Below, piece after piece: positions 1,617 through 63,990 of a stretch of 64,000 nt of DNA (its first letter is position 1; each line of letters starts with the position of its first letter). The stretch spans positions 1,488,001-1,552,000 of the forward strand of contig NC_047083.1 in assembly GCF_902459465.1 (NCBI RefSeq). The letters run 5' to 3'. Made by a program: the position numbers and the translations under genes. This stretch comes from Asterias rubens (taxonomy: Eukaryota). The notes under the pieces were generated by a model. It did not search any database. It was not told the DNA's origin and saw only the letters and a list, made by a program, of their open reading frames with translations.

Positions 1617-1815
1617 CGTTTCTTTTCTTTCGCCGACGACCAACCGACAGATACCTCTCCATTAAAGGTTGATCCCTCTGCTCCTGTCCTTTGTCATTGC
1701 CACTCTTCCACTGTTCCACTATGTCATTTGTCACATCCACAGTTGAAATTGAAGCACAGCACACCACTACCATTGTCAGCGGTAGGGTGATGAGACAAAA
1801 TAAAACCACTTTCAT
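1617..1815 (-). CDS. Orphan first coding exon (gene Z): signal peptide + propeptide + polybasic cleavage site; remainder of gene not found in window
   Basis: Strong acceptor ttctttctctttttgcag (exon starts 1872), ATG at 1815, MKVVLFCLITLPLTMVVVCCASIST...YLSVGRRRKKRN, then phase-1 donor G|GTGGGT at 1617. Same layout as exon 1 of gene C. Confidence 0.6.
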
Positions 1816-1941
1816 GTCTTTGAGTAGGCCTGTTCAGAGCTAGATTTATGCAACCGTAATCTGGCTGATATCCTGCAAAAAGAGAAAGAACAATATTATT
1901 TGAGTTGCATGAGATGTTGCAAAACTTGTGTGACACGTTAC

Positions 1942-2283
1942 TTAAAGGGTAGGGATACTTTTTGAAGGACACAAAACACAATGTCCAAAGATTTACATTA
2001 AACACACACAGTTTGAAGATAATTAAGGTAGAAAGCTTCCCTTAAAATACCTTGCTGAGGTGCTGCAGTTTTTGAGAAATGAGTAAAAGAAGTCACGAAA
2101 ATAGTTCATGACATTCATGACATTGTTTTACTAATTTTCTCAAAAACTACAGCACCTCAGCAAGTAATATTTTAAGGGAAGCTATCTACATTATATTCAA
2201 ACGGTGTAAGTTTAATACAAATCTGTGGAAATTGTGTTTTGTGTTACAAAAAGTACCCATCTCCCTAAAAACGGGTCTTTACA
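1942..2283 (+). mobile_element. MITE family 2 copy
   Basis: ttaaagggtagggatactttttgaaggacac ... aaaaagtacccatctccc. Confidence 0.8.
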
Positions 2284-2591
2284 AAGTCCTCTTTTTTTTT
2301 GGGGGGGGGGGGTGTTTAAATTATTTATTAGATTTTTATTTAAATCGTTGTTGTACCTGTTGTTAACACATGAATCGAACTGCCACTTAGCAACAGGGCT
2401 GGTCAAGTGGTAAGACATCTGCTCCGGCAATGCAAAGGTCGTGGGTTCGAATTCCACCGAGTGACTTGTCTGTGGGATTTCCACAGAACTCGGGAAAGTT
2501 ACACAGTGGACATTGTTTAAATAATGTTACTTTTTGTTTTGAATAAATGCTAAATAATAAACTACCAAACGAAGGTGTATTATTGGGGAAT

Positions 2592-2970
2592 GGGGGGGGG
2601 GGGGGGGGGGGGGGGGGGGGGCAAGTGTTATACTTGTTCAGATAGATGTAACAACACTATGACCCTGAACTTATGTTTCCAAAACTCTACGTAAAAATCT
2701 TAGTTGCAATCAAATAGTAACTATGTTACATGGTATAGCCTATAACTGGGCAAACTTGTGGAACTGCATCACAAAACCGTACACCCCCGTCACCCCCACA
2801 CCACGCCCCCCCCCCCAAAAAAACAAAACAAAAAAAAACCAAACAAAACCCAAACCCCCCCCCAAAAAAAACAAAAACAAAACAAAAACGAAGGCATACC
2901 AGTTAAAAACAATCATTGCCAAATGTTTTGTTGTTGCTGGCCTACGCCCCCACCCCCCCCCCCCCCCCGA
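2592..2970. repeat. Homopolymer-rich tract (30-G run, several C and A runs)
   Basis: G run 2592-2621; C runs near 2806, 2856 and 2949-2968. Confidence 0.9.
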
Positions 2971-60138: not shown

Positions 60139-60173
60139 TTCCAGGTGTGGTTATCTTGATTTCACTCCATTCT

Positions 60174-60307
60174 TAGGCCGTGTCCGAAACGGCGACTTCG
60201 GCTACAGCTACGGCTAGATCGCGCGCGTCTGCCTATTCTTCAACACTGGTAGACGCGCTGATCTAGACGTAGCTGTAGCCGAAGTCGTCGTTTCGGACAC
60301 GGCCTTA
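60174..60307. mobile_element. Hairpin MITE (copy at 3359-3488, fragment at about 29606-29650)
   Basis: ggccgtgtccgaaacggcgacttcggctacagctac ... gtagctgtagccgaagtcgtcgtttcggacacggcc; TA-like flanks. Confidence 0.85.
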
Positions 60308-60820
60308 GTCATTGTAACCAAACTGAGGTTGCACGAAATAATAGTCTGGTGCCTGGTTTGCGCAATGAATGTTAACATTCCGTACTGTTATTGGAAACAG
60401 GGAACATGACCAAGATGGTGACGGCGTGATAAAGGTCTATCTTTCGAGTTAGGACGAGTAACCCTTGTTCACTGCGTACGTCTATGGATACGGAAGTTAA
60501 CTCGTCTTAAGTCCTAAGATTAATCTTAAACCAGGAAGAGTTTGGTGAAATCGACGGCTGGGGGGGGGGGGGTTCCCACATCAGATTTAGTCCGAAATTG
60601 CTAAATCTTAAAAAAAAATAATAAAACAATATGAAAGACAAACATTTCGGTTTGAGTTTTACAAAACACATCCTGAACATGCAGAAAATTTGTCGGAAAT
60701 CAGGGTGTATCAATGCTTTCACTTTCTGGGTAATCAAAACAAATGTTTATCTTGAGGTAATGTATATGTTGAAGCACTATCACGTACAGTTTTGACTGTA
60801 TTTTGTGGCGGTCAGTCGAC

Positions 60821-63800
60821 ATGGATCCACGCCCGTATGTAAGGTTCGTCTACTCTGCGCTTCTATGTATTTATTGGACTGGTGAGTGTTCACAAACCTT
60901 TTCCTTTGGGGTAATTATCTTACAGTGGTAATCAATGGCTATCTGCGTTTAAAATGTAAGGATGAACGTGCTTTCTCGTCCTTGTCTCATTGAACTTGTT
61001 ACCTAATCACACGTGTAGTTCATTCCGGCTTAGAGACAATTATTCACACGACTCTACCACTATGCAAAGTTTCAAATCCTATTCATGTATGGTGTTACTG
61101 CAAACCTTAATGGATGGTATCTCCACCATGCAGTTTCAAATCCTACTCATGTACATACCACGAACATACTTGGTTGTATCTCCACCATGCAAATTTTCAA
61201 ATCCACTTAGGTGTAGGCCCACGAAGCTCTACTATTATTGTATCTCCACCATGTATAGTTTCGAATCCTACTCGTGTACATGGTGTTTCTGCAATCATTA
61301 ATAGATTGTATCTCCACCATTAGGTGTAGGCCTACGAAGCTCTACTATTATTGTATCCCCACCATGCAAAGTTTCAAATCCTACTCATGTACATGGTGTT
61401 ACTGCAAACTAGATTGTATCTCCACCATGCCAAGTTTCAAATCCTACTAATGTACATGGTGTTACTGCAAACCTTACTAGATTGTATCTCCACCATGCCA
61501 AGTTTCAAATCCTACTAATGTACATGGTGTTACTGCAATCATTAATAGATTGTATCTCCACCATTAGGTGTAGGCCTACGAAGCTCTACTATTATTGTAT
61601 AGTCCACCATGTAAAGTTTCGAATCCACCCATGCATACACTTTCCGTTGTGACCTGTCACTAATCTTGTGAAAATAACAGTTACTCTTAAACCTCAATAT
61701 TTTCGAGAACTTCGTATATTTTTGACTTCGTTTTGTGTTTTATTTAGAACGGATGAGTTCGCCTTTACCGTATGTTAATGGTCTATCTCTGTCCATCACT
61801 TCTAACACCACAACGTTCATCGAGAACCAATCACCTGCTCTGTTCTTCTGTAACGTTTCGGGTCTCAATAGTTTATTTATCTACAGGTGGTTTATTGGTA
61901 GTACAAAAGTGAGCAACGGTAAGTTAGGATCAGGGCAAAGAAGGGCAATATTATTTGGGGAACTGTGGCTTTGTTTGCTTAGATGATATTAGAAGCGCCA
62001 TTAATAAGGGACTAAAAGGGTAGCGACGAGTTCTTAAACGGCCGTTTAAAACCGGCAGGGTCGTGGCCGTGCGATAAAGGCCAAAGCCGAATGTTTAAGA
62101 ACGAGTCACTACTTTTTCATTCCCATTCAGAAATGCCTTTTTGGTTAAAGTTTCAAAACAACAGTTACACATATAAAAAATATATAAACATCTAAAGCTA
62201 TTGAAAACTACTTTTTCGTTTCTTCAATAATTAATATCTTTAAAATATGTCTTTATTACAGGGAATGTTAGCACACTCGTGTATGCTCCGAAAAGACGAG
62301 ACTTTGATGTTCGAATCGAATGCAGCGTCTCTGGAAGCCAAGATAAATCAAAGAACGCTACGTACGGACCGCTGGAAATAAAATGTAAAACTGGACAAAA
62401 GTTATACAAACTGATATTATTAGAATACACAGAAATATAAAATTGTAGTTAAAACTAAACCAACAGGGCCCTATTTCATAAAGCCTTTAATAAGCACACA
62501 AATTTGCTAAGCACAGAAAAAGTATTGCTTATCAGCAACAGGTTACCAGCCAAAATTACATTCAGTTTACATTGATGTGACTGGTGCCCCCCTCAATTTT
62601 TGCTAAGCAAGGAAATTTGTCAAGCGTTATCTGCTTTTAATTGAAATCAGGGCCCTTTAAATTTCAATTAAAATAATTTTACATATACTTTGTTTGTATT
62701 TCCTTTGCATCTTTATTAAAGATCCTCCGTCTTCCACTCGTATTTGCGCGATGCAAGAAGGCGACTGCGTCGACAGTCCCGCACCGATTCCACCAGGAGA
62801 CTCCTTGACCGTCATTTGCACGGCCCTGGATTCAAATCCTGAAAGTCACGTGGACCTGCAGGTCAAGGGTCAACGAGATGGTTACAAGGTGTTGCACGAC
62901 GGGAACGTAACACTAGTAGAACGTAGTGATCAGACGAAGTATGGGTGGAACACCGAGGCCTCCGTAGAAATACAGCCGGAGTGCGGACCGTGTGTTGTTG
63001 TCGTCGAATGTCACGTGATGTTTCTTGAGAATATCAGCTACAGGGAGGAACAACTTTGCATACATGTTCAACAAAAACAAACAGGTGCACATAAAGAACA
63101 GATTAATTTGTTGGGTCTGTGCTATAAGGTCAATTTGAAAAGATAGATAAAATGTTGAATGCTTTGCTTACAAAATGAATGGTTTTTTTTATCAATAAAT
63201 TAACGCTTTGACAATGTTTTTTTTTATACCTATAAATAAAACACAATGACTGAGACGAATCGAATCATTGCAAGACAACGAAACTGAACGCACTGACAGA
63301 AAAACAAAAACCTTTTGAGTGGACTAGGGGAATTTAAATGAATTTGAATGCGTGTTAGTTAAAGCCATTGGAAATTTTCGGTAAACAGTATTTTCCAAAG
63401 GCACACACTTCGTGTTTCACAACTTATATATAAAATAACAAACCTGTGAAAATTAAGGCTCAATTGGTCATCGGAGTCGGGAGAAAATAACGGGAAAACC
63501 CACCCTTGTTTCCGCACGTTTCGCCGTGTCATGACATGTGTTTACAATAATTCCGTAATTCTCGATATCGAGAATTGATAATTGTTTTAATGTTTTCTCA
63601 AAAAGTAAAGCGTTTCATGGAATAATATTTCAAGAGAAGTCTTTCACCATTACCTTCTGTAATCCCTGTAAGTTATTTGTAAATCTGTTCCGAAAGTGTC
63701 CAATGGCTTTAATTAGAATGAAATCGTTGAAATTGGACGGGGAAATCTATAAATATTATTATTTTTTATATTCTACAGTTTTACCCACTAGAGATCCCAA

Positions 63801-63990
63801 AGAGTCACCAGTTATATCATGGATAACACCAACCATCTCTTCATGTAGTGCACTTGTCGTAGTCTTTGTTGTTGTTTTCTTGTGGTGTATCATTGCAAAG
63901 AGAAGAAGAAGAAGAGATGAACACCGAGTGACGAAACGTCAAACTGTAGACATGAGGCTGTCAACTGACATGATTTCTACCCCACAAAGG
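60821..63990 (+). CDS. Gene E (partial): signal peptide-Ig-Ig-TM receptor, probably a third RTK continuing past the window
   Basis: Exons 60821-60881, 61748-61918, 62262-62384, 62722-63084, 63779-63990 (930 nt, open). TM ALVVVFVVVFLWCII followed by AKRRRRR. The 61-nt signal exon and phase-0 intron after the TM exon match genes B/D, not A/C. Kinase not visible. Confidence 0.8.
61056..61630 (+). repeat. Second, more degenerate array of the same 68-bp minisatellite in intron 1 of gene E
   Basis: Repeated ttgtatctccaccatgcaaagtttcaaatcctactcatgtacatggtgttactgcaa, interleaved with a variant unit containing taggtgtaggcctacgaagctctact. Confidence 0.9.
63359..63712 (-). mobile_element. MITE family 4 copy (partials at about 3940-4174 and 19082-19174)
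   Basis: ttaaagccattgg ... ccgaaagtgtccaatggctttaa; body is the reverse complement of 48205-48579. Confidence 0.85.

Follow-up and report, generated by a model that had tools for sequence, protein, structure and literature searches.

A probable starfish-lineage cluster of two interleaved immunoglobulin-superfamily receptor families, one of receptor tyrosine kinases and one with predicted cytoplasmic propellers or acidic tails

Clustered, tandemly duplicated, and quickly diverging type I receptors of the immunoglobulin (Ig) superfamily make up the KIR/LILR and SIRP loci, the Hydractinia Alr locus, and the Botryllus fuhc region. In cytoplasmic TRIM proteins, NHL propellers serve as modules that bind RNA or protein; in the Teneurins and PAL/PAM, which are membrane proteins, the NHL propeller is extracellular or luminal. 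In echinoderms, recognition receptors other than TLRs and NLRs are poorly known. Here, we describe a locus of the starfish Asterias rubens in which genes of two Ig receptor families lie interleaved. The window, that is, the whole 64,000-nucleotide stretch analyzed (positions 1,488,001–1,552,000 of the 10.6-Mb contig NC_047083.1, in a 417.6-Mb assembly), is animal DNA with 39% G+C and three runs of N; it was studied together with 90 kb of left and 40 kb of right flank. All coordinates follow window numbering, with negative numbers lying left of the window. Genes were mapped by combining stop-to-stop open frames with Pfam scans and with tblastn searches that used exons of the window as queries.

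Over ∼130 kb, the genes follow one another in the order D', Z', an ammonium-transporter gene (Amt), Z, B, A, a gene of the major facilitator superfamily (MFS), D, C, and E. Four of them (D', B, D, and E) encode receptor tyrosine kinases (RTKs) with Ig domains and a transmembrane (TM) segment and are referred to as family K, and the other four receptor genes (Z', Z, A, and C) form a second Ig-TM family, X. We consider the array, with a probability of roughly three in four, to be a starfish-lineage cluster of two distinct type I Ig-superfamily receptor families that became interleaved via old local duplications. A sequence-only reading of the window had placed A, B, C, D, E, and Z around an MFS gene between two arms, and all six genes have the positions, strands, and domain classes given there. 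The receptor genes lie as follows.

-57373 to -50121, plus strand: D' (K)
-43651 to -32692, plus strand: Z' (X)
1833 to about -11234, minus strand: Z (X)
12806 to 5143, minus strand: B (K)
24084 to 19265, minus strand: A (X)
33158-44933, plus strand: D (K)
50703-57431, plus strand: C (X)
61726-70435, plus strand: E (K), of which the window holds the 5' part up to 64000

The locus resembles KIR/LILR, SIRP, Alr, and fuhc in its clustered, tandem type I Ig receptors and their quick divergence. In contrast to these systems, two unrelated ectodomain families are interleaved, instead of one ectodomain being furnished with two kinds of tail, and the tails consist of a kinase, an apparent NHL propeller, or a disordered acidic region rather than immunoreceptor tyrosine-based inhibitory or activation motifs (ITIM/ITAM). 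When the 21 Ig exons were compared all against all by BLASTP, X and K exons separated, and the sole match between the classes had an E-value of 0.001 over 73 amino acids.

The K genes of the window are built from the exons listed below. The models of B and E are partial at the 5' end, starting at Ig-like exons.

12806-12501, minus strand: B, weak Ig exon
11048-10806, minus strand: B, membrane-proximal Ig exon
within 10306-9830, minus strand: B, TM exon
9050 down to 5143, minus strand: B, kinase exons, among them exon kx at 8661-8584; motifs GxGxxG at 8925, VAVK at 8865, HRDLATRN at 7204, DFG at 7150, PIRW at 6376, and the C-lobe CW at 5143
33158-33481, plus strand: D, Ig exon
33728-34180, plus strand: D, Ig exon
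34261-34587, plus strand: D, TM exon
35623 to 44933, plus strand: D, kinase exons; GxGxxG at 35740, VAVK at 35812, the HRD-DFG exon at 43792, and CW at 44895
61726-61983, 62231-62437, and 62661-63143, plus strand: E, Ig-like exons
from 63559, plus strand: E, TM exon
64710-70435, plus strand: E, kinase exons, beyond the window; GEGQFG at 64911, VAVK at 64983, HRDLAARN at 68164, DFG at 68224, PVRW at 69143, and CW at 70340

The Pfam model PK_Tyr_Ser-Thr (PF07714) matches single exons of B (four exons) and D with E-values of 2.4e-17 to 8e-4 and also matches E, and the E and D' exons align throughout with their B and D counterparts. The kinase domains are spread over seven exons; GxGxxG, VAVK, HRDLAxRN, DFG, and P(V/I)RW are present in all four genes, and the kinases are predicted to be catalytically competent. 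TM and Ig-like exons precede every kinase, with weak Pfam support for Ig in B and E. A kinase had been predicted for E from the part of the gene inside the window, and its complete kinase exons indeed lie just past the window end.

Like the K genes, FGFR, PDGFR/KIT/CSF1R, VEGFR, RET, and Tie2 combine extracellular Ig domains with a single TM helix and a tyrosine kinase that carries the HRDLAxRN, DFG, and P(V/I)RW motifs, and human Ig RTKs are the best PDB matches of the starfish genes. The starfish K genes differ: their Ig exons number no more than two or three, the kinase insert is short, and they form a clade of their own at one locus. Because the best PDB match changes from exon to exon (PDGFRA/KIT; PDGFRA/RET/CSF1R/Tie2; FGFR1/4), we assign the K genes provisionally, and only at the level of the FGFR/PDGFR/RET/Tie supergroup. 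With their two or three Ig domains, the K receptors would signal by ligand-driven dimerization and trans-phosphorylation.

When the D kinase exon k2 was searched against the whole genome, the matches on this contig were both copies in D, together with B (51%), E (42%), and D' (80%); every further match had 33–42% identity and fell on one of two different contigs. A maximum-likelihood tree based on 270 exon-anchored columns groups the locus kinases from three species in one clade (99/98), set against two other RTKs of this genome. One lineage contains D, D', K2 of Acanthaster, and an RTK of Patiria (100/99), another contains E and K1a, K1b, and K3 of Acanthaster (99/99), and B stands separately. 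D is sister to D', and its orthologues are Acanthaster K2 and the RTK of Patiria. In this tree, both the D and the E lineage are older than the split of the species. D and D' are themselves duplicates of old standing, of which the exons alone still align and the introns do not; Ig1 is the most diverged exon, with 73% nucleotide identity versus 83–92% for the kinase exons.

At the hydrophobic leader of D (33040–33260), the Ig1 exon has no in-frame ATG; a stop lies directly upstream, and a nearby ATG is out of frame. The corresponding position in D' does contain an ATG. D may start in an upstream exon, or its 5' end may be damaged. The TM/stalk exon of D' (-55979..-55311) contains more than 10 tandem threonine-rich units (TSTTLPDEG-like), compared with a single such segment in D, and this repeat would form a mucin-like stalk.

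As assembled, D contains a tandem duplicate.

36260-39522 and 40023-43568: tandem 3.8-kb duplicate inside the introns of D, holding all three N gaps
36347-36513, 39523-40022 (500 N), and 40110-40296: the N gaps

The two copies are 99.0–99.4% identical over 1895 + 954 bp (blastn). An 87-bp island (40023–40109) is identical to 36260–36346, and each copy is gapped at the same internal position, gaps 1 and 3 starting 3 nucleotides past the splice donor of exon kx (ACAG/GTA); the 500-N gap is the junction of the copies. Exons kx and k2 are each doubled in the assembly, and with the unit counted once, D is an intact kinase. Because the paralogues B, E, and D' pass straight from kx to k2 with no intervening exon, no exon is expected inside the gaps; none of the recognized exons is broken by the three of them. 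The tandem copy is most likely assembly redundancy, with a haplotype-level false duplication as its likeliest cause.

The X genes A and C share a layout of signal peptide, V-set/C2-set Ig exons, one TM exon, and a single cytoplasmic exon of 296 amino acids in A and 320 in C.

24084-23584, minus strand: A, signal peptide and V-set Ig
23359-22988, minus strand: A, C2-type Ig
22150-21857, minus strand: A, TM exon
20152-19265, minus strand: A, 296-amino acid cytoplasmic exon, ending at the stop
50703-51041, plus strand: C, exon 1, signal peptide and Cys-rich segment
51823-52173, plus strand: C, Ig1
52874-53224, plus strand: C, Ig2
53625-54104, plus strand: C, Ig3
54460-54681, plus strand: C, TM exon
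55300-55392, plus strand: C, small exon
56472-57431, plus strand: C, 320-amino acid cytoplasmic exon, predicted NHL

A, C, Z, and Z' have in common a first Ig exon of the V-set type and a distinctive membrane-proximal one (BLASTP E-values of 1e-12 to 1e-4). Across the whole genome, a profile of the membrane-proximal Ig exon matched only these four genes, and a V-set profile added only weaker matches, all on the same contig. Among these are at least seven tandem V-set exons at 4.60–4.77 Mb, distant relatives of X Ig1 (E about 1e-13), and two further V-set exons at 1.657/1.669 Mb, about 105–117 kb right of the window. The search with kinase exon k2 gave no kinase match near these outlying V-set exons of the contig.

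The Asterias amurensis protein XP_071809719 matches C exon by exon, with a single TM segment at residues 358–378 and a C-terminal domain at 454–758. Since a signal peptide and a single TM helix precede it, the last exon of C is cytoplasmic, and the NCBI models of the family members all have one TM helix before the NHL domain. Relative to this orthologue, C shows 94–97% identity in exon 1 and Ig1 (97% in the V-set domain), 87% in Ig2, and 68–75% in the TM, small, and NHL exons (NHL, 75%). One isoform of the A. amurensis orthologue skips the Ig3 exon.

Searched against PDB sequences with phmmer, the 320-residue exon of C matched the NHL domain of Thin (8.5e-9) and of TRIM71 (2.9e-6), and also TRIM2/3. 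An exhaustive search of protein libraries returned six starfish clusters and then generic repeat proteins, with matches down to 2e-16, and all seven distant library matches that were checked are Pfam NHL-repeat proteins. The AlphaFold model of the exon (mean predicted local distance difference test score, 80; predicted template modeling score, 0.82; seven-sequence alignment) retrieved propellers of the WD40 and NHL types in Foldseek. From homology and model together, the cytoplasmic exon of C is predicted to be a six-bladed β-propeller of the NHL type.

The cytoplasmic exon of A shows no similarity to that of C in BLASTP and no match among PDB sequences or in an index of 5.8 billion proteins, searched for proteins up to 1.75 times the query length. 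In hhalign, however, a C-family profile aligned with A over 157 columns, in register to both C termini (88.8% probability, E 2.5e-6). The two exons are collinear end to end in MAFFT, and the A exon matches an NHL exon of Patiria directly (8e-4). A and C also have the same exon architecture and matching Ig exons. Because of the profile match and the shared gene architecture, we accept the A exon as a probable diverged, remote homologue of that of C.

In contrast to the TRIM-NHL proteins (Brat, Mei-P26, NHL-2, TRIM71/LIN-41, TRIM2/3, and Thin/TRIM32), A and C have no RING, B-box, or coiled coil; the propeller would lie on the cytoplasmic side of a single-pass Ig membrane protein, and its sequence stays below the threshold of the Pfam NHL model. 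From Teneurins and PAL/PAM it differs by its cytoplasmic location, placed by the signal peptide and the single upstream TM helix. Its most likely role would be to dock a partner, either a protein or an RNA. Full-text literature searching turned up no earlier account of an Ig-TM receptor that bears an NHL propeller in its cytoplasmic part, all family members are "uncharacterized protein" in NCBI annotation, and the architecture appears to be undescribed. Among named records, it occurs in starfish only, the nearest being proteins of Asterias amurensis, Patiria miniata, and Acanthaster planci, in addition to two contig proteins that carry no source name.

In the A. rubens genome, NHL-like exons joined to Ig-TM exons were found in A and C only. 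A genome search with a profile of A and the C family had given a third NHL match, which we set aside as an ordinary TRIM-NHL tandem array with no Ig or kinase neighbors. This array (contig 21, 10.05–10.11 Mb) comprises at least five near-identical single-exon TRIM-NHL genes in tandem (RING, B-box, coiled coil, and NHL), some copies being frame-broken, with reverse-transcriptase fragments between them.

Most of Z lies left of the window.

1588-1833, minus strand: Z, first exon, signal peptide MKVVLFCLITLPLTMVVVCCA, an open frame that is 92% conserved just upstream of Z' Ig1
-1396..-980, minus strand: Z, Ig1
-2489..-2013, minus strand: Z, Ig2
-3450..-3016, minus strand: Z, Ig3
-4624..-4259, minus strand: Z, TM exon
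to about -11234, minus strand: Z, acidic tail exons

The three Ig exons of Z match those of A and C. What follows the TM exon is confined to long open frames in which Asp, Glu, Ser, Thr, Pro, and Gln are abundant; they would encode a low-complexity acidic tail. No ITIM, ITAM, or immunoreceptor tyrosine-based switch motif (ITSM) was found in the tail exons scanned, only generic YxxPhi sites. Most RNA contigs on the Z stretch are repeat-derived noise, and a few long ones are informative. Contigs of two presumed RNA runs join the tail exons at 1346–1714 and 642–971 of sequence L004 through canonical GT-AG sites on the minus strand, with the frame open. Other contigs cover the TM exon, whose donor phase fits the tail acceptor phase; these compatible splice phases and the common orientation suggest that the TM exon joins the tail exons.

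A propeller had been expected for Z as well. Instead, Z and Z' would carry the long acidic, disordered tail in its place, with no NHL remnant downstream of either gene. Neither five NHL sequences used as tblastn queries nor a hidden Markov model applied to all open frames revealed an NHL-like exon from -60 kb to +72 kb apart from the exons of A and C. Z belongs to the propeller-gene family by its ectodomain only. Z and Z' form the arms of a ∼15-kb inverted repeat around the ammonium-transporter gene, and their DNA identity rises from 90–93% at the 5' outer ends to 98.5% near the center, introns included, which suggests gene conversion between the arms. The near-identity of the tails therefore reflects recent copying or gene conversion and not constraint. 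The third Ig exon of Z' is doubled.

As far as the searches of this genome reach, both families are confined to this locus. Linkage of X and K is old and widespread in starfish, being present in Asterias, Acanthaster, and Patiria. On scaffold DF978690 of Acanthaster planci, the order is a G protein-coupled receptor (GPCR) gene, adh_short, X1 (three Ig domains, TM, and NHL), K1a, K1b, X2 (NHL), and K2, with K1a head to head with X1 and K2 tail to tail with X2. On DF978509, X3 is followed by K3, and on DF978506, X4 occupies the scaffold start and a further X-type Ig exon comes after it, without a kinase in between. The Acanthaster gene P0159 is an X gene that has a 112-amino acid acidic tail and no propeller. 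In Patiria miniata, gene P0004 (Ig, Ig, NHL) stands tail to tail with the RTK of the D lineage. Gene P0003 has adh_short downstream, as does Acanthaster X1, and its divergent upstream neighbor, which carries an Ig exon resembling the third of E, is probably the K1 orthologue. The adjacency of X and K genes thus recurs in both relatives. Neighbors are arranged in tandem in Asterias and convergently or divergently in Patiria and Acanthaster; neither strict alternation nor relative orientation is conserved between the species. The GPCR gene and adh_short flank the X1 end of the Acanthaster cluster, and GPCR genes also lie right of Asterias E, which suggests a wider conserved synteny around the cluster.

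The eight genes form three co-oriented blocks (K X; X K X; K X K). The alternation proposed in the sequence-only reading thus holds in Asterias for the K and X ectodomain classes, D' and Z' included, but not for kinases and propellers, as Z lacks a propeller, and it is not strict in Acanthaster, where the order is X K K X K. Four K and four X genes can be arranged in blocks of 2, 3, and 3 in 70 orders, of which, by our own count, 4 alternate in every block, and alternation alone is therefore only mildly unlikely. The stronger fact is that the searches found two otherwise unrelated four-gene families nowhere but in this one 130-kb region. A two-gene cassette that was copied again and again, as had been supposed, does not account for the newest duplicates, the sister pairs D/D' and Z/Z': D' adjoins Z', D adjoins C, and Z adjoins B. 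We infer instead that old local duplications of a segment already holding one K and one X gene would have produced the interleaving, before the lineage of Asterias separated from that of Patiria and Acanthaster. Later, lineage-specific events would include the duplication of D and D', the inverted repeat of Z and Z', inversions, and, in some X genes, a propeller that was lost or replaced.

Several points weigh against a cluster of this composition and origin. The searches of the animal's own genome give lower bounds. The X tree is poorly resolved, with Asterias X branches of 0.9–1.3 compared with 0.1–0.6 for the kinases, and because of this weak tree and the long Asterias branches, X orthology and the history of the cassette cannot be reconstructed. 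The X tree is also too weakly resolved to be compared with the K tree for co-duplication. No named RTK class wins among the PDB matches in exon-level searches, and among the contigs shown, none spans both the TM exon and the tail of Z. The Pfam NHL model remains below threshold on C and A, C giving only SGL (0.0028); C is therefore regarded as a diverged NHL propeller. The propeller model of A has low confidence, and because its alignment used C-family sequences, it is not independent evidence for the fold.

A possible, although doubtful, alternative is a functional partnership, in which each X receptor works with the neighboring K receptor as co-receptor, adaptor, substrate, or decoy, and selection on co-regulation or co-inheritance keeps the genes interleaved. 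The detection of both families at one locus only would fit such a coupling, and so would the direct adjacency of a K gene to every X gene with readable flanks in Asterias and to most X genes in Acanthaster and Patiria. The adjacency of D' and Z' moreover arose by duplications separate from those behind the D-C and B-Z pairs. However, tandem duplication of a two-gene segment followed by slow rearrangement gives the same picture in the absence of coupling, the orientation of neighbors varies between species, and Acanthaster has K1a and K1b side by side as well as the X-type Ig exon that follows X4 with no intervening kinase. If K and X are not coupled, the locus still illustrates cleanly how segmental duplication can amplify two unrelated families together.

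An unlikely, more specific version holds that the locus encodes a signaling module not known before, in which an orphan RTK and the Ig receptor encoded next to it, with its cytoplasmic NHL propeller or acidic tail, form obligate heteromeric recognition receptors, whose genes would have been kept together throughout starfish divergence, possibly for self/non-self or gamete/tissue recognition.

We find it very unlikely that the locus is an immune or allorecognition system of the classical paired activating/inhibitory kind, whose members share variable, polymorphic ectodomains but have opposite signaling tails. The genes are indeed clustered and fast-evolving members of the Ig superfamily, with X genes on long branches, and Ig1 is the most diverged exon in both D/D' and Z/Z' (79% amino acid identity in the latter). 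The sequence hallmarks of such a system were nevertheless not found: K and X ectodomains have no meaningful similarity, the scanned tail exons of Z contain none of the ITIM, ITSM, or ITAM motifs, and the TM helices of A, C, and Z contain no Lys, Arg, Asp, or Glu. With neither shared ectodomains nor these motifs nor a charged TM residue, the locus is therefore not read as a classical paired-receptor system. The conservation of C between the two Asterias species, higher in the V-set domain than in the NHL exon, is the reverse of the variable-ectodomain pattern.

That misassembly or pseudogene decay accounts for part of the array, its pattern having no biological meaning, is highly improbable: the 99%-identical, gap-bracketed tandem unit and the missing ATG of the leader, unlike in D', both concern D, and the unit is limited to D introns and two exons, whereas the other genes are strongly divergent (unalignable introns in D/D', <30% identity of A and C), long open exons and intact catalytic motifs occur throughout, orthologues are annotated in three other species, and spliced Z exons are found in RNA contigs.

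Two features of the locus deserve attention. An NHL propeller tethered to a surface receptor could link recognition outside the cell directly to an NHL client. The interleaving of the X family with a private RTK clade in three starfish genera makes the locus a testable candidate for a lineage-specific receptor/co-receptor system.

The remaining genes of the region are the following.

-85k to -61k, minus strand: CUB-repeat gene
about -27k to -23k, minus strand: ammonium-transporter (Amt/Rh-like) gene
27811-31076, plus strand: monocarboxylate-transporter-like MFS gene between the two arms (Pfam MFS_1, E 1.5e-8, on a 298-amino acid exon; the match of the N-terminal exon is weak)
72053-73282 and 74498-75709: two paralogous single-exon rhodopsin-type GPCR genes, right of E

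The MFS gene is an unrelated passenger in the locus. Two kinds of repeat are also present. A 68-bp minisatellite occupies 11028–11800, in the ectodomain intron of B (11.5 copies), and 61117–61633, upstream of the first Ig exon of E (∼7 copies), and gives rise to long spurious open frames on the plus strand. A dispersed repeat occurs in dozens of copies on both strands of the window and its flanks (for example, at 32590–32957, 36748–37063, and 40531–40846); it likewise yields open frames and explains the enormous depths of RNA contigs aligned to the locus.

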